A stretch of 64,000 nt of DNA from Octopus bimaculoides (taxonomy: Eukaryota): assembly GCF_001194135.2 (NCBI RefSeq), contig NC_068984.1:18444279-18508278 (forward strand), in the 5' to 3' direction. Position 1 is the first letter of the stretch. Every line of letters starts with the position of its first letter. Positions 3,925 through 60,498 of this stretch are shown piece after piece. The notes beneath the pieces were generated by a model. The model did no database searches, was not told where the DNA came from, and saw only the letters and a list, made by a program, of their open reading frames with translations. The translations under genes and the position numbers were made by a program.

Positions 3925-4317
3925 CTTCTTCTTCTTGGCACTCCTTCGGTTACGACGACGAGAGTTCCAGTTGATCCAATCAACGGAACAGCCTACTCGT
4001 GAAATTAACGTGCAAGTGGCTGAACACTCCACCGACACATGTACCCTTAATGTAGTTCTCAGGGAGATTCAGCGCGACACAAAGTGTGACAAGGCTGACC
4101 CTTTAAAATACAGGCACAACAGAAACAGGAAGTAAGAGTGAGAGAAAGTTGTGGTGGAAAAGTACAGCAGGGTTCGCCACTATCACCTGCGGGAGCCTCG
4201 TGGAGCTTTAGGTGTTTTCGCTCAATAAACACTCACAACACCTGATCTGGGAATCGAAACCACGATCCTACAACCGCAAGTCCGCTGCCCCAACCACTGG
4301 GCCATTGCGCATCCACT
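3925..4317 (-). mobile_element. tRNA-derived SINE, family D (octopus OR-type by recollection), full length, (AAG)n tail
   Basis: Minus-strand head with A box TGGCCCAGTGG and B box GGTTTCGATTCC; 11-bp TSD cagtctcaagt at 3914-3924 and 4318-4328; homologous to 25622 and 49245 copies. Confidence 0.9.
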
Positions 4318-10100: not shown

Positions 10101-11327
10101 TCAAATGAACTTCATAACCAAACTAACAATCGCATTTCTTTGCTCTAACTTTGCTAAATATTTTCTCTTTCCTCAAATTTCACATTTAATTGTGGTGCTT
10201 AATGTGTTGCCTTGTAGCAGTTTCATTGCATTTCTATAACATCAACATTCTGAATCCAAGTAAAGAGAACGGTTTCTTGTTTAAAGATTCTTGTTGGAAA
10301 AGAAGCAGGTTGGAATGTAGAGTTAGAAAAAGAATTTACAAACAAAGCAAGGTGGAGGAGTCATTAAATAATTCTAAATGAATTATAGAAATTAAGGTCA
10401 ATGCTGTCTCTGTAGAAACTGAAAACATTACTCAAGACTTAGACTTATTTAACTTCTAAATCTGAGATTTGTTTAACCTCTAAATCTGAAATTTATTTAA
10501 TTTCTGGATTCCGAGATATATACTAACATCTAATATAGTTATGGTCTACCTGTGAACTTGTAATTGTTTAAAACTAATGATGATGATGTATTCTAAAGTA
10601 GATTCCCATTTACTCTCTTGCTACTACTTCCAGAGATAAGTTTTAGGAAGACAACTGTCATTCCTGAACTTACTAATTCGTACGAATAACATTTGTCACA
10701 AGGAAAGTCAAAAATAGATTGCATTCTTTAATGAGTGGTTGTCATGAGGAATGGTTCATCCACGTCTGATGCAATTTCTAGTTAGTTGTTCTTAGCAGGG
10801 AATATTTTCAAAGAGTACAAAAGATCCAAGTATCTCAGAATCCAACTCACCAAACAATAGCATCAAAACACTAGTTCAATGTATTTAAGAATTTTGTTTT
10901 TCTTGTCTTAGAATCATGTTTTGTTTTGTTTTCTATTTTCCTTCTACTAAAAACTTTTACAATAGTTATTTTTGAAGTTTTTCCACAAAGTTCTTCTTAA
11001 TTTTCTATTCTATCCTTACGGTTTTTATATTTTATCTTTTTAACAGAGCTTCTTGTTTCAAATATCAAAGAACGAGATGTACTAGAATTATTTAATTTAT
11101 ATGGCAACTAAATAATTAATACTTTTGATTAGAATTCACTGATTGCTGAATTAGCTTTGCTCATAATCTTCAAATGAACGTTTGATCGCCATGTGGGTTT
11201 TTTATGTTTTTGTATTCTTCCTTTCTTTTCTTTTTCCTTTTTTTTTTTTTTTTTTACTGGTATATTTCTGAATTCAGGGTTGTCTTGTTGAAGATACTAC
11301 TGTTTGCATTTGTCTTTTATTCAACAG

Positions 11328-11464
11328 GAGCATACACTGGTTGGCCGCACCGATGCTGCTGTTCAACAAGATATTCACCTCAGTGGCCTGGGAATCATGC
11401 CAGAGCACTGTATTGTGGACTTTGAAGGCAATGACGTCTACCTCACACCTCTTGAAGGAGCCAG
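11328..11464 (+). CDS. KIF13: KIF13 exon, N-terminal half of FHA domain (EHTLVGRTDAAVQQDIHLSGLGIMPEHCIVDFEGNDVYLTPLEGA+AG)
   Basis: Acceptor tcttttattcaacag|GAG, donor CCAG|gtaaat; 137 nt; FHA motif DI.L.G.GI.PEHC. Confidence 0.95.
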
Positions 11465-11749
11465 GTAAATTACCTTTAACACTACTACCACTGCTACTAC
11501 TCTGTTTGCATCCTGAATGTTGGATTTTATTTGGGGTGCTATGTGTTCTTTAAGACGACTTTGGTCATAACAGCAACAAAAGACATCTATTCTCATTTAT
11601 CACAGGTGTTTGGTTCCACAAAACACCTGTGATAAATGAAATACAGAATATATAAATTAAAATGTTTGTGGTTCAAGCAGAATCTTTGACTGATCACCAA
11701 CCCATGTTATCACAGATCACTTCCTGTTAAGCATAACACAGTTTGCAAT

Positions 11750-12079: not shown

Positions 12080-15000
12080 TTGTCCTTGATCAGTGATGAA
12101 TGAATCAGTGATAAAGGAGACTAAATATATGATTGGTTATATGAAATTTCTTAATAACATATTCAGTCTTTGGAATCTTAAATGTCATGTTTTGCGGTTG
12201 AAAGATTTTCAAATATTTATGTCTACATTCTCTTTGAATGACTTCCATCACCTATCACCATACGGTGTCTTAATAGATCTTTCTTTTCTTTTTTTTTTTT
12301 TATTTGTTTCAGTCATTAGACTATGGTCATGTTGGGGCACCCCCTTGAAAAATTTTAGGTGAATGAATCAACCCCAGTACTAAATTTTTTAAGCCTGGTA
12401 CCTATTCTATCAGTTTCTTTTGCCAAATTGCTAAGTTACAGGGACATAAACACACCAACACCACAGACACAAAGACACACGCACATATATTGTATGTATA
12501 TATGATGGGCTTCTTACAGTCTCTGTTTACTAAATCCACTCACATGGCTTTGGTCATCCTGAGGCTATAGTAGAAGACACTTGCCCACGGTGCTACTCAT
12601 TGGGACTGAACCTCAAACCATACCTGCACTGTACACACTGAGTCAAACTGGCAACTGATATTTTTAAATAAGTTATCCATTAGACTTCCGATTCATATAT
12701 GTAGTTCCCGGTTCAAATCCATCCTGGCACTATCTACACATCCAGGAATGAGACAACTGATGGCCATTGTGGTTGAAACCAATCTGAACATAGTGGGGAT
12801 GTATATGTTAAAGATGGTGCTAATTGTCTGGAAAATGGTCTGATAATTTTATTAACTCAACCTCAACTCAGACATTTCAATAAATGTCCTCTTTGAGAAA
12901 AGTATCATAATTTAGAGCTAATTTTTACATTACCTAATCACAACCATATTTAATATTCTTAACTTGGGAATGTTGACATTAAGTTACTATGGGAAACACT
13001 CTTTACTCATTCAGTAATATATTTGTCAGAGAATCATTTTGAGGTGTTCTTTAGTCACTGTATCCTAATCATGGCCAAAAATGAGGAATTTATCCCTAAG
13101 CACTTCTTAATGCTCTTACAAGCCCATATTCCATCTTTCTCAGTTGATGAATATTGCTTTCATATATTGAAGAGAAGGGCTCCCCACCCTCTCTCTCTCT
13201 CATAACAACAGTTCTCAGTTCTTCGTGAAAAATGAAAGTATCCTCTTTTGATTAGCTTAATTTATTTCATTAACAGGTTCCAGCTAGTGCCCCACCATTC
13301 AGCTGGGATTTCCTATTGCCTCTTTTAGCATTCATTATTCTGCTGCTCAGTACTTTATGGTTTCATACTAGCTATAATAAAACCATCTGTTCATCTAATT
13401 CTATTCTCTCCCTCTTCCCTCTTCACTTCTCCCTCTCGCTTTGTGATACATACACACTCTCTTTGCCTTTCACTTTCTCTCTTTGCCACTCTAACCTCCT
13501 TTTTCAATTTCCTTTCTGTTTTCCTTTCTTCACCTCTTTTCCTCTCACCTTTCTTTCTTCTCTTCCCCTCTGTGTTTAGATTGTTCTGCTTTCTCATCAA
13601 TTACCTGCCTTCATGCCATTCACAAAGTTGCATAAATCACCTTTCCTCCTTCTACTGAATGTAATTTATAGTTCCGTGGCTTAGTAATTAGAATGTTCAA
13701 ATCTTTGGCAGGCCTTAGGTTGTGACCATGACCATGGTTCAATGCACTGCTAGCCTCAGTCTACCTAGCTGAAAACTGTGTGCCACTTTGGAATTGAACG
13801 GTTCTTATTCACAGTGGCATCCATCTGTAAAAATATATATTTCAATAAATTTGTAACTCAGGCATGGTTGTGTGGTTAAGAAGTTTGCTTCCCAACCACG
13901 TGGTTTCTGGTTCAATCCCATTGCACAGCACTTTTGGGCAAATGTCTTTTACTGTAGCCTTGGGCCAACCAAACCTTGTAAGATGGAAACTGAAAGTTCT
14001 TCATAAAAATGATGGTGGTACTCCAGCATGACCACAGTTTCTGGCTGAAGCAAGTAAATTGAGGAAATTTGTAAATTCATTCTTTGGGCATGGTCATGTG
14101 GTCTAGAAGTTCACTTTGCAACTGGGTGGTTTGGTTTTAAGCCCACAATACAGAAAGTGTCTTCTGTCATGATTTTGTGCCAGCCAAAGCCTGTGAGAGA
14201 AATTCAGTTGATAGAAACTGTATTGAAGCCTGTTAAAAGCTTATTCCTATTTTTTATCTGTTGCCTTGTTTAACAATGCTCCTGGATCTTTGAGTCCACT
14301 TTGTTGTGAGACTCAAACAACTATCCAGTCTGAGAATAGCAATTAATAATTATTATGTTCCCTCTCACTAAGACTGAAAACTTGGCAAAGTTGTTAGGGT
14401 GTTGGATAAGATACTTCACAATGTTTGTTTTGACTCTCTGCATTCTGAGTTCAAACTCCACTGGGGTCAACTTTGCCTTTTCTCCTTTCAAGGTTAATAA
14501 AAAAGGTACCAAGCCAGAGAAGTGAACTGACAGAACTGTTAGAAAGTCAGGCTGGCAAGTTGTATTGGCTGAAATAGGTGGCCTTTTCCTTGAATACATG
14601 TATGTGTCATGGAAAGGAAAGATTCGCATGTATGGGCAATTGCTAGTCTTCCTCAAAAAAAAGATCTTCCTCTGACTAAACTTTAAAGAAAAATATAATG
14701 TAAAACCAGACAAAAATTTTTAATAAAACTCAGTGTGTCCAACTTAATATATTATCTCTTGTATATATATAATATATTATCAAAATTAATTTACAAAGGT
14801 ATCGTTAATTCTACTATTATCTAATGTAATAGATAATAATAGAATTAACAATACCTTTGTAAATTAATTTTAATAAATCATTTTTCTCATAAATCTTTAA
14901 CAAGATTATTTCACACTGGTAAGCTGCTGTGATTTTGGCGCGAAATGAATCAGTAGTGGCACAGACTTCAAAAAGATAAGTTGGGAATCTCTTATCTTGG

Positions 15001-23388: not shown

Positions 23389-25621
23389 AGCTGACCGCAG
23401 TGCACAACTGGTACTTATTTTGCCGCTGCAGGATTTGAAACCAGAACATAAAGATAGATGAAACGCTGCTAAGCATTTTGCCCAGCATGCTAACGACTCT
23501 GCCAATTTACTGCCTTTACAACAAAATAAACAGGAAAGGTAATATTGATCATAATTGATGGGTGTGTAGTTATTGATTGAGACGATTTTTTTTTTTTTAG
23601 TTTTTTTTTTTTTTCAAAATATGACAAATAAATAGAGATCCTTTAAAAAATATGAAATTTCAAATTGGAGATTATCCAGTCAGGGGTAATGAGGGAAGCT
23701 TTAAGTTGAGTCTCCGAAAAATACTACAATATCTGTTTGAAACTCAATATGTACTTGATTTCATTTTGGTAACTCTTGCGAAGCACAAAAAAGAACCTTT
23801 ATATCTAAATTTTCATTAATACATGTATATATACATTGACACACAAACACATCTATGTATGTCTTATAGTATCGATATATATATATATATATATATATTA
23901 AAATGTATTTACTGGAAGAACTCTTTTTCATATTTGTTGTGTGTTGCATCTCTCTCCTCTCTCTCTTTCCCTTCTGTTTCTTCTATGAGAAGAATATACC
24001 CAGGTGGCAAACACACAAATATCATTATCTTTATTTACTTTACAAAATTTTCACTTTGTAAATGATTTACAAATAGTTTTTTTTTTTTTTTTGAAGTTAG
24101 TAAACCAACTTGAATAGACATTTAAAAAAAATAAAAACAGTTTCAAAGAAAAATAATTCACTAAACAAAATCAAACCAAATCAATGTATTCTATATTATT
24201 ATTATTATCATCATTATCATTATTATTATTATTATNNNNNNNNNNNNNNNNNNNNNNNNNNNNNNNNNNNNNNNNNNNNNNNNNNNNNNNNNNNTTATGT
24301 CTATTTTTGGTACTGTTTTTGATTCTTCTTCAAACCTTTACTATATATTATTCCCATCAAACAATGGTATTAGAATGTTTGGAACTTTTTGGTTTCTTTT
24401 GTTTGTTCGTTTTCGAGGTTTTTTTCTTTTTTCCTGTTACCAATTATTTTAAGATGTTACAAACTAGAAATAACTATTTTAAAAGTTAAAAATAAAATTT
24501 TGTACATACTATATTTATATATTTTCTCTCGCACCTTATATTGCCTTTCCTTAAAATTCTTGCAACTAGTTTGCTTCACCTCCTGCCACCCTCTATTAAA
24601 AATCATTGATTATAACAGAATCATATCCTGTTTCCACCTTCTGTCTCTGTTTCTGCTCCTGCTCCCTCTACCATAGTTTTCATTCTTCGTCTCCTGCCTG
24701 TGCGGAAAATGATATTCCCAAAATAATGGATGCTTGGAAAAACTGCAGTAATGTTCAATTAATGGAACATCACCTATCTTTCACAGTCACCTGTTGACAC
24801 TAAAATTCATATCTTGAAATAATGTCTGATTATAAATTCAAACTTTTTTCCCCGCTTCTAGATTTCAATCACATGTACTCCCGCACACATGCCCAAGCTT
24901 AGATGATGTGTCTACTCACACATATGGCCATGCATAGACCATATGTATCTGCACACACATATTTCCACACATACATTATATCGTTGTCTGCTCACCCATA
25001 TGCCCAATCATGCACTACATACATACATATGTTCATACCATGCGACTACTTCAGTGTTATATCTGTCAATAAGTATTGATTTCTCTTGACTAGGTTCAAG
25101 TCCAGTTTTTGTTATAGCTGGCTGTTGTTAGAGTTGGTTAAACCAATGCCAGTTTATTACTGGCAAATATTTTGTTGGCCTTGAAGGAATGAAAAGTAAT
25201 GCTTATTCTAATGTAATTTGAACATAAATGTTGTGGCATAAAAACACAAGACATACACTGTAATACATTTAGTAAGATGTTTATTGTTACTGCCTACTTC
25301 AATGTTAAAATAACTATTGGAATTTCTTTGTTTGGAATGTTATTTCTTGTATTTTTGCACTTTTTTTTTTATTCTGTTATGAATGAGTCAGAAGAGGAAA
25401 TGCTGTAGCAGTCATGACTTTTGTAAGCCACACTACTAGACAGATGAGATTGCATGAAGGTGATATCCATCCTGAATTATCTGTCTCAACAATGTGGATG
25501 TGGGGTGGCATCAGTAGGTTAATCATAATGCTTGCCACAGTGTGAACTCTGCTAAAGGCACCCAAGAACAAGATGAGAAGTGTGCTGTTGTTCAGTTCCT
25601 CCCTCCTAATCCCTGGATAGC

Positions 25622-26008
25622 TTGTTGTTGTTGGCACTCTGTCGCTTACGACGTCGAGGGTTCCAGTTGATCCGATCAGCGGAACAGCCTGCTCGTGAAA
25701 TTAATGTGCAAGTGGCTGAGCACTCCACAGACACGTGTACCCTTAACGTAGTTCTCGGGGATATTCAGCGTGACACAGAATGACAAGGCTGACCCTTTGA
25801 ATTACAGGCACAACAGAAACAGGAAGTAAGAGTGAAAGAAAATTGTGGTGAAAGAGTACAGCAGGGTTCGCCACCATCCCCTGCCAGAGCCTCGTGGAAT
25901 TTTAGGTGTTTTCGCTCAATAAACACTCACAACGCCCGGTCTGGGAATCGAAACCGCGATCCTATGACTGCGAGTCCGCTGCCCTAACCACTGGGCCATT
26001 GCGCCTCC
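25622..26008 (-). mobile_element. tRNA-derived SINE, family D, full length, CpG-rich (young), (CAA)n tail
   Basis: Head GGAGGCGCAATGGCCCAGTGGTTAGGGCAGCGG...GGTTTCGATTCC; 13-bp TSD atccYtggatagc at 25609-25621 and 26011-26023. Confidence 0.92.
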
Positions 26009-26119
26009 CCATCCTTGGATAGCATACTTAAACTAAAAGACATTCCAGCTGTGACCATTACATAGTTCTGAATTATCACTAACTTCAGTGTTTAACCCCA
26101 GGACAATGGTTTTTTTATC

Positions 26120-26690
26120 AGGCAATTAGGTTGTATTGATGGTAATCATCTCAGCCGAGATCAGCAATTGGCACACGACTATGGCTCGGCATATATTTAC
26201 ATCAATCGCTTTAAAGGATGCACTGTTTGTTTATGTAAACTGTCATCACTATGAGTTCTGTAAATTCAATGAAACTGGTGTAGCTGGATTCAACTGTAAA
26301 TTCCGTGAAGGACTAGAAGAATTCACTGAACGTGTACGAATTTGATTGGAAGTCATAGTGCAAATGGTGGTTACACTACCTTTTCCACTATGACTTCCTA
26401 TCAAATTCCTACATGTTTTTATACTATTATGGTGATGAAGTCTCGAACTGAGTTGGAAATATTTACATGAAGAGTCTAACAAACCTATCAGATACCTTGA
26501 AATTTACACAGCGGCCTTTATTATTGATTTCATAAGTGATAGCAGATATTTATATCAACTGGTACATAAAAAGGTACAAAACCACAGCAGATAGAGCTGC
26601 ATGTATTTTCGTCATCTGATTCAAAGTGAATACATGGCGGACGCACGTAAATTTACATCAATTGATGTTATGGAGTTAATGTGTGTTATT
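26120..26690 (+). pseudogene. Probable decayed PIF/Harbinger DDE transposase
   Basis: Ordered motif remnants across stops and frameshifts: LGCIDGNHL (26126-26152; cf. GAIDGKH), GSAYIYINRFKG (cf. GS.YFNYKG), SYMFLYYYGDEV (GDE 26431-26439; cf. PYV.VGDEAF), IFVI*FKVNTWRTHVNL (WR 26635-26640; cf. FGIL..RWRI...INL). First-to-second Asp spacing is about 99 codons. Aligned by eye. Confidence 0.5.
26328..26418 (+). ncRNA. Candidate intronic pri-miRNA or hairpin RNA (91-nt ungapped foldback)
   Basis: 44 facing positions: 37 Watson-Crick, 3 G:U, 4 mismatches, no gaps; loop 26372-26374. The structure is certain; processing or expression is not shown. No match to a miRNA I recognise. Confidence 0.45.
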
Positions 26691-27726
26691 CCCCCCCCCC
26701 TAAATTTGTGAATAATAGCATAGTGCAGTTGAGTACAGGTTTCTGAGAGACTCATCACTGTTCCATTGCATTTCTGACTGTCGGGATGACAAGGAAGGGT
26801 TGTGCATAACAATAGGCTTTGTTCACCAACGTTCACAGTTTTCTCTAATATACACATACAAGATATAAATAGTGTGTTTGTGTGTGTGTAACTGTAGACA
26901 TTGCTGTGGTTAAAAAGTTCACTTCACAACTACATAGTCTCAAATTCAATATTACTGCACAACATTTCTTCTGCTATGGACTTGGATGATTTAAAGTCAT
27001 AAGAGGAAACTGCATGAACCCTTACCAAAACAAACAATCGGAGCCTAGGCAGCCCTCCAGCTAGCTATCTCCTATCAAACTATCCAACCCATGCCAGTAT
27101 GGAAAATAGACATTAAATGATGATGATGATGATGATGATGGGATGTCCATCGATGTTTATAGATTCTGTATTCATCATCATTCGAGTGAAGTGGTTCTGA
27201 TGTTGACATTATGACTGGTCACTCTACATTTTCAAAGACTTGTGGAATAAAGATGTCCCTTACTAGAAAAACAAGTAAGGATTGGCAGTAGGAAGAGTAT
27301 CAAGCTGTAAAATCATTCCCTAAATTCATCTCCATCCAAATCCATAGCAAAATGGATTTTAAAACGAAGAAAATTAAATATAAATGGCAGGCTTCCAAAC
27401 AGTTTCCTACAGTTGTTCCCAAGGTAATATTTCCTCATGAGCTGACATATTTATGCAGAATAATGGAATTGAATAGGATTACTTATATGACAGAGACACT
27501 CACAACTCTCATGTGACATCAAGACAAGGAGACACAAACACACACACACAATGGGTTTTTGTTCAATTTCCATCTGCTGCATCCACTAACAAGGTTATGG
27601 TAGAGGAATCAAGGTACCACACAGTGGAACAGAACCCTAAGCTATATAGTTGGAAGGTAAACTTCTTAACCACACAGCCACACCTGTGCCCATAATAAAA
27701 AAATTCAATTCCAAATTTCAACTCAC

Positions 27727-27781
27727 AAAAATAATGCTGTCTTCATTTGTCTTGGAGACAGACGAAGACAGCATTATTTTT
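27727..27781 (+). other. 55-nt near-perfect hairpin
   Basis: aaaaataatgctgtcttc (27727-27744) is the exact reverse complement of gaagacagcattattttt (27764-27781). One A:C mismatch follows, then 7 more pairs and a 3-nt loop. Confidence 0.85.
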
Positions 27782-29338: not shown

Positions 29339-29355
29339 TTGTCCTATTATTGTAG

Positions 29356-29465
29356 AACCTGTGTCAATGGCTCTGTGATACATCAGAAAACCAAAGTCAG
29401 AAATGGCGACCGAATTCTTTGGGGGAATAACCATTTTTTCCGGATAAATCTACCAAGACCCAACA
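29356..29465 (+). CDS. KIF13: KIF13 exon, C-terminal half of FHA domain (R-TCVNGSVIHQKTKVRNGDRILWGNNHFFRINLPRPN+A)
   Basis: Acceptor ttattgtag|A completes AG|A = Arg, donor AACA|gtaagc; 110 nt; GDRILWGNNHFFR is characteristic of KIF13. Confidence 0.97.
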
Positions 29466-49244: not shown

Positions 49245-49581
49245 CTGATGGGGTTCCAGTTGATCCGATCAACGGAACAGCCTGCTCGTGAAATTAACGT
49301 GCAAGTGGCTGAGCACTCCAGACACATGTAACCTTAACATAGTTCTCGGGGAGATTCAGCGTGACATAGAGTGTGACAAGGCTGGCCCTTTGAAATACAG
49401 GGACAACAGAAACAGGAAGAAAGAGTGAGAGAAAGTTGTGGTGGAAGAGTACAGCAGGGTTTGCCACCATCCCCTGCCGGAGCCTCATGGAGCTTTAGGT
49501 GTTTTTGCTCAATAAACACTCACAACTGCGATCCTAAGACCATGAGTCCGCTGCCCTAACCACTGGGCCATTGCACCTCCA
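49245..49581 (-). mobile_element. tRNA-derived SINE, family D, lacking the 3' tail and B-box region
   Basis: Homologous to the other D copies; perfect 15-bp TSD taaagataaaagaat at 49230-49244 and 49582-49596. Confidence 0.9.
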
Positions 49582-60351: not shown

Positions 60352-60498
60352 AGAGGAGCATTTGTAAGCGAGCCAGCAATTTTAGTGAAGAGAAAATGTC
60401 ACAACAGCCAGATTTGGTCAATGGAGAAATTTGAGAACAAAATTATTGATATGCGGGAGTTGTATGATGAAAACAAAACTTTGGCACATCCATTGATG
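60352..60498 (+). CDS. KIF13: KIF13 exon (RGAFVSEPAILVKRKCHNSQIWSMEKFENKIIDMRELYDENKTLAHPLM); 3' end may instead be 60525
   Basis: Acceptor ctgttttatag|AGA in phase 0; SEPAI and EK.ENK.IDMR.LY motifs. Two in-frame donors: ATG|gtacta (60499) and TCG|gtcggt (60526). Confidence 0.92.

Follow-up and report, generated by a model that had tools for sequence, protein, structure and literature searches.

The 64-kb window analyzed here, by which we mean the whole stretch of octopus DNA under study, carries exons of a KIF13-like gene. We located these exons by tblastn with a KIF13 sequence, a query that was used for exon placement only, and obtained two FHA-domain exons, both on the + strand, as well as a third, weaker match at 60406-60486. 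The FHA-domain exons bound an intron of ~18 kb, and within this intron lies a 91-nt foldback at 26328-26418, with the upstream exon 14.9 kb away and the downstream one at 2.9 kb. Both the intronic position of the foldback and the identification of the + strand as the KIF13-like sense strand, which the first-pass annotation had made, agree with this exon placement. At such distances from the exons, the foldback is neither a mirtron nor an exon-complementary element, and its intronic position suggests that it would be transcribed within the KIF13-like pre-mRNA. Runs of N at ~17.6-18.5 kb, ~24.24-24.30 kb and ~41.4-41.5 kb are assembly gaps, which identify the source as a gapped draft assembly. 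The features discussed below are collected in Table 1.

Table 1. Coordinates of the features described in the 64-kb window, with the evidence or properties of each.
Feature	Position	Strand	Evidence or properties
KIF13-like FHA-domain exon, upstream of intron	11301..11465	+	tblastn
KIF13-like FHA-domain exon, downstream of intron	29351..29458	+	tblastn
5' arm of hairpin, 44 nt	26328..26371	+	pairs position by position with 26375-26418
Spacer or terminal loop TAC, 3 nt	26372..26374	+	fold and pair count
3' arm of hairpin, 44 nt	26375..26418	+	pairs with 26328-26371; weak direct similarity to 26247-26267
Studied hairpin as returned by inverted-repeat scan	26329-26417		43-nt arms, 86% complementary, 3-nt spacer
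Non-coding dispersed-repeat block, outside hairpin	26090..26214	+	77.5% identical to L001, which lacks the hairpin
Sister palindrome	11593..11639	.	22-nt arms, 95% complementary, 3-nt spacer, no target-site duplication
Sister palindrome	14777..14876	.	47-nt arms, 94% complementary, 6-nt spacer, complex AT-rich sequence
Sister palindrome	27727..27781	.	26-nt arms, 92% complementary, 3-nt spacer

The foldback consists of 44 mirrored positions on either side of the loop, with no insertions or deletions. By direct pair count, the + strand forms 37 Watson–Crick pairs, three G:U pairs (26328:26418, 26332:26414 and 26369:26377) and four mismatches, which are C.C at 26337/26409 and 26361/26385 and T.T at 26347/26399 and 26365/26381. 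Our recount therefore reproduces the ungapped foldback with 40 of 44 positions paired that had been described at this site, and the sequence reads as it was quoted. On the - strand, the three wobbles turn into C.A, leaving 37 Watson–Crick pairs, no G:U pairs and seven mismatches, so that the G:U pairs do exist on the + strand only, as had also been stated. The two arms are 84% identical, differing at 7 of the 44 positions, with four of the seven changes breaking pairs.

RNAfold with dinucleotide-shuffled controls, a check that the first-pass annotation had proposed, gives the + strand of the hairpin a folding energy of -51.1 kcal/mol (z = -11.0), and none of 200 shuffles was as stable. The - strand folds at -46.5 kcal/mol (z = -9.8). 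Among 12,442 sliding 110-nt windows taken on both strands of the 64-kb window, the hairpin ranks second in stability. It is retained when folded in a 391-nt context and is predicted as a single-stranded DNA fold as well. The structure is real and far beyond chance.

The surroundings of the hairpin had been described as a transposase fossil, a claim that we do not uphold: Pfam, tblastn and a six-frame protein search all came back empty, and the adjoining ORF-like stretch is a non-coding repeat. Six-frame Pfam searches detected no transposase domain in 25990-27490, nor did Pfam detect one in any stop-free stretch of at least 45 aa across 18.7-34 kb, and a concatenated six-frame query covering 26011-26889 returned no match at E ≤10 among 5.8 billion proteins. 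Harbinger-like strings (GCIDGNH and SDSRYL) can be picked out by eye in frames upstream and downstream of the hairpin. We rejected a PIF/Harbinger reading of these strings: Pfam does not recognize a frame-corrected chimera of the region, and tblastn with HARBI1 and DDE_Tnp_4-like queries likewise placed no Harbinger transposase near the hairpin.

An exhaustive phmmer search with the 82-aa upstream stretch against 1.84 billion representatives returned two weak matches, P0001 and P0002. Both are spurious ORFs with no Pfam domain, and both match window positions 26111-26233 only. P0001 derives from a 1.3-kb Logan contig (L001), and P0002 (UniParc UPI0006956A9C) from another copy of the block at 26090-26214. 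L001 is 77.5% identical to the window over this block, matches nothing else in the window and lacks the hairpin. It contains an in-frame TGA within the matching stretch, and its differences from the window are spread evenly over the three codon positions (8/7/9), which indicates that the upstream ORF-like stretch is a non-coding dispersed repeat. The block is probably what had been read as a transposase fossil. An invariant core motif, ATATTTACATCAA, occurs on either side of the hairpin, at 26192 and 26648, and L001 carries it three times; the repeat block that carries this motif is seen at 26090-26214 and 26600-26690 of the window and at 569-900 of L001. Exact look-ups of 10 neighboring ORFs in the protein collection found none of them, and a profile search with the dispersed-repeat block gave no matches. 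In a metagenome scan for the same block, the two matches obtained cover 23-25 nt and do not extend further; we set them aside as chance.

The wider interval 26011-26889 occurs once in the 64 kb, between interspersed repeats that recur elsewhere in the window at 85-88% identity. Immediately before it lies an interspersed repeat of ~390 nt (25621-26008, - strand) with copies at 3925-4314 and 49251-49580 that are 85-88% identical. By eye, the head of this repeat shows tRNA-like A- and B-box strings that lend it a SINE-like look; neither ARAGORN nor Rfam calls a tRNA in it. On the other side, 26890-27140 and 27400-27720 are opposite-orientation copies of another abundant repeat, which is represented by ~10 more fragments in the window. 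TRF found no tandem repeats around the hairpin.

An inverted-repeat scan of the window that allowed spacers of 0-8 nt, restricted to palindromes of complex sequence, recovered four with spacers of 3-6 nt, namely the studied hairpin and three sister palindromes. The scan assigns the hairpin 43-nt arms, to which the G:U pair 26328:26418 adds the 44th position. In 60 Markov resamples of the window (40 + 20), there were no short-spacer palindromes at a score of at least 12, and the four found in the real sequence thus point to a recurrent mutational process in the region. The four palindromes have no sequence in common and no flanking target-site duplications, which argues against the insertion of one mobile element. 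Their simplest reading is a recurrent process that would write short inverted copies of adjacent sequence. No 110-nt stretch of the window folds more stably than the palindrome at 14777-14876 (-58.2 kcal/mol, - strand), whose three mismatches are all C.A on the + strand. The presence of three more palindromes of like design within 64 kb, one of them stronger, weakens the earlier view of the hairpin as the best candidate for an undescribed element, and suggests that it has a mutational rather than a selected origin.

Two of the sister palindromes have neighbors of their own. The one at 11593-11639 lies ~130 nt 3' of the KIF13-like exon ending near 11465, close to the splice donor, where an effect on splicing or editing is conceivable. 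The one at 27727-27781 lies 1.3 kb downstream of the hairpin and adjoins an interspersed-repeat copy.

The foldback at 26328-26418 is probably best explained by a neutral inverted duplication of the template-switch type within the KIF13-like intron. Its anatomy is that of a template switch, with an inverted copy of directly adjacent sequence, a short turn and no target-site duplication, and an ungapped palindrome with so small a spacer is what a single copying event is expected to leave. In the proposed mechanism, one local inverted-duplication event during replication or repair, of the template-switching type, would have produced the foldback: the nascent strand would have copied ~44 nt of adjacent sequence as its reverse complement, leaving the 3-nt turn. 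The event would have fallen in the long KIF13-like intron, after which the copy would have drifted neutrally until the arms came to differ at 7 of 44 positions. The arm identity of 84% fits neutral decay of an age similar to that of the flanking interspersed-repeat copies, which are 85-88% identical to one another in pairwise comparison. Once the intron is transcribed, the + strand RNA may fold into a duplex of ~40 bp, on which dsRNA-binding enzymes could plausibly act incidentally (ADAR and, at a low level, perhaps Drosha or Dicer). We infer both the template-switch mechanism and the neutrality of the hairpin, and we infer no dedicated function for it. The earlier proposal of an inverted duplication in a dead transposase accordingly divides into two parts: the inverted duplication stands, given the ungapped arms, the 3-nt spacer and the three sister palindromes, and the dead transposase is not borne out by the homology searches. 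As to which arm came first, 26385-26407 in the 3' arm resembles 26247-26267, 120 nt upstream, in direct orientation (CACTATGAGTTCTGTAAATTC against CACTATGACTTCCTATCAAATTC). This similarity (p = 0.023 before correction for eight tests) hints that the 3' arm could be the ancestral copy and is too weak for use.

The strand on which the arms pair best deserves separate consideration. All seven arm differences are G:U or pyrimidine–pyrimidine on the sense strand, a bias with a crude two-sided probability of ~1/64 that weak selection in favor of the + strand RNA fold could explain. The palindrome at 14777-14876 shows the opposite bias, with its three C.A mismatches on the + strand, and the other two sister palindromes are mixed. 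At least one of the G:U pairs in the hairpin falls at a CpG, a site at which deamination is to be expected. We did not accept selection on the + strand fold, since the sister palindromes have no consistent strand bias; their opposite or mixed bias, together with an arm identity like that of the neighboring repeat copies, leads us to treat the strand bias as unproven.

Several other explanations can be set against an inverted duplication. The hairpin could belong to a multi-copy foldback element, such as a non-autonomous DNA transposon of MITE-like or palindromic type, or form the internal palindrome of a larger repeat. The arms do resemble terminal inverted repeats with next to nothing between them, interspersed repeats are plentiful in the region, and 26060-26700 includes the dispersed-repeat block copied elsewhere (L001, P0002) with its recurring ATATTTACATCAA motif. 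However, the flanks of the hairpin (...gaattcact and ttatactatt...) share no target-site duplication, neither arm nor the region 26010-26848 has a second copy in the 64-kb window, and the related contig L001 corresponds to 26090-26214 only, without the hairpin. JGI metagenome contigs scanned for the two-arm pattern, and protein space searched with the ORF that spans the hairpin, yielded no matches, and we regard a multi-copy element as unlikely. An assembly or sequencing artefact, in the form of a chimeric palindrome in a gapped draft, might be suspected from the several N runs, but it is hardly credible: artefactual palindromes are perfect, whereas here 7 of 44 arm positions differ and the sister palindromes are imperfect too. 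The hairpin might alternatively act as a functional dsRNA element, either an ADAR editing or docking site that affects the host pre-mRNA or a precursor of endogenous siRNA (hpRNA-like). The sense-strand RNA of the host, likely a neuronal motor gene, would fold back on itself into an almost perfect duplex of ~40 bp. Known Drosophila hpRNA precursors run to hundreds of base pairs, far longer than this hairpin, which counts against an siRNA precursor. A-to-I editing in metazoans, the octopus included, acts mainly on dsRNA from young repeats (PMC9989829), and the arms pass the filter for intramolecular dsRNA used in that work (at least 20 nt and at least 80% identity), so that, with transcription taken from the intronic position, the hairpin qualifies as a candidate ADAR substrate. 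Yet incidental editing would not prove function, the exons at 2.9 kb and 14.9 kb are too distant for an exon-complementary editing site, and the sister palindromes suggest that mutation, not selection, produced the hairpin; a functional dsRNA element is, in our estimation, very unlikely.

The hairpin could also be a young, lineage-specific intronic miRNA gene co-transcribed with its KIF13-like host, a reading to which we likewise give very little probability. Drosha would cut ~13 bp above a basal UG and Dicer would follow, to release products near 26340-26362 (5p) and 26386-26407 (3p). Much of the anatomy is suitable. The hairpin is stable, intronic and on the sense strand, the strand on which alone its G:U pairs function; with 40 of 44 positions paired at -51.1 kcal/mol, its arms offer the complementarity of at least 16 nt expected of a pri-miRNA, and the predicted pre-miRNA of ~67 nt is of normal size. 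The UG at the stem base that had been reported can be read directly from the sequence at 26327-26328, and the CNNC motif is, as had been noted too, absent at the expected distance, with none 16-18 nt beyond the inferred 3p cut. The basal UG and CNNC motifs are helpful, not obligatory. The shape of the hairpin counts against a miRNA: its stem of 44 positions and loop of 3 nt contrast with a preferred stem of 35 bp and an apical loop of at least 10 nt (PMC10710096), the apical 10 positions of the stem being paired save for two 1x1 mismatches. Rfam 15 at the gathering threshold gave no match in the whole window; at E ≤10 the only matches were to generic miRNA hairpins, at 22-34 bits against thresholds of 47-140 (the best scoring 33.5 bits against a threshold of 140), and the mir-315 model was not among them.

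The MIR-315 family enters because of a seed. Positions 26340-26347 in the 5' arm read UUUGAUUG, which matches the seed region of this conserved family; a 5p product that starts at 26340 would bear the seed UUUGAUU, whose target 8-mer, AATCAAAA, is that of Ovu-Mir-315 in Data S3 of PMC9699675. Against this, such a coincidence is expected ~0.2 times by chance given ~24 registers and ~138 families, and the match is probably a coincidence. We rejected membership in MIR-315, as the seed appears in one register only and the mir-315 covariance model does not match the hairpin at E ≤10. The 3p registers showed no coincidence with the seed sites of PMC9699675. We found neither arm sequence in the supplements of that paper, an absence that is uninformative because they do not give full miRNA sequences. 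Background rates bear on both sides of the question. Coleoid cephalopods gained many lineage-specific miRNAs, with at least 90 novel families in octopods (PMC9699675), so the base rate for a miRNA may exceed that in primates, and intronic template-switch hairpins are a documented source of new miRNAs (PMC10710096). In the human lineage, however, template switching left 6,054 miRNA-sized hairpins in genic regions, of which just 0.9%, or ~1%, are annotated miRNAs (PMC10710096); the novel octopus families were required to be present in two species (PMC9699675), and three similar palindromes lie near this one. The most specific version, a species- or genus-specific young miRNA born by template switching, expressed with its neuronal host and processed from 26340 to carry the ancient MIR-315 seed UUUGAUU, would be a long shot.

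What the hairpin means depends on which of these explanations holds. If it is merely a neutral inverted duplication, the hairpin is ordinary, and the interest lies in the four palindromes together as examples showing that hairpins of miRNA size form often in this region, a stock from which lineage-specific miRNAs could arise. If the version with the MIR-315 seed were true, a miRNA born de novo would have converged on an ancient seed, in the lineage whose miRNA expansion is the largest among invertebrates. Small-RNA data that showed precise processing would make the hairpin a clean case, from outside the primates, of a miRNA that arose de novo through template switching.

Read as a neutral inverted duplication of the template-switch type, the hairpin finds its closest counterparts in those described by Monttinen, Frilander and Loytynoja (2023, PMC10710096), which are likewise inverted copies of adjacent sequence made in a single event, with near-perfect stems, and which arise through frequent and recurrent events. 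Like the hairpin at 26328-26418, they are intronic, and they are transcribed with their host, as it would be. Those hairpins are defined by parent–child comparison, whereas ours is likened to them by its anatomy in one sequence; its 44-nt arms stand at the long end, and its 3-nt loop is very short. With MITEs and foldback elements that yield miRNA-like hairpins, it shares two long inverted arms, little internal sequence and a setting in repeat-rich DNA; it differs from them in having no target-site duplication and no second copy in 64 kb, and the copy of the neighboring repeat in L001 comes without it. Its fit to the canonical pri-miRNA, and to the novel octopus families of Zolotarov et al. 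(2022, PMC9699675), is mixed: it shares with them a sense-strand intronic hairpin with more than 16 nt of complementarity, and the basal UG and the predicted pre-miRNA of ~67 nt are in place here also, but the stem is ~9 bp too long, the loop has 3 nt, the CNNC motif is missing and the scores fall below the Rfam thresholds. Finally, the intronic inverted-repeat dsRNAs edited by ADAR (PMC9989829) are intramolecular duplexes of more than 80% identity within introns, as this one would be. Those duplexes form between two repeat copies, whereas the hairpin is one local palindrome, and at 44 bp this duplex is shorter than those that are typically hyper-edited.
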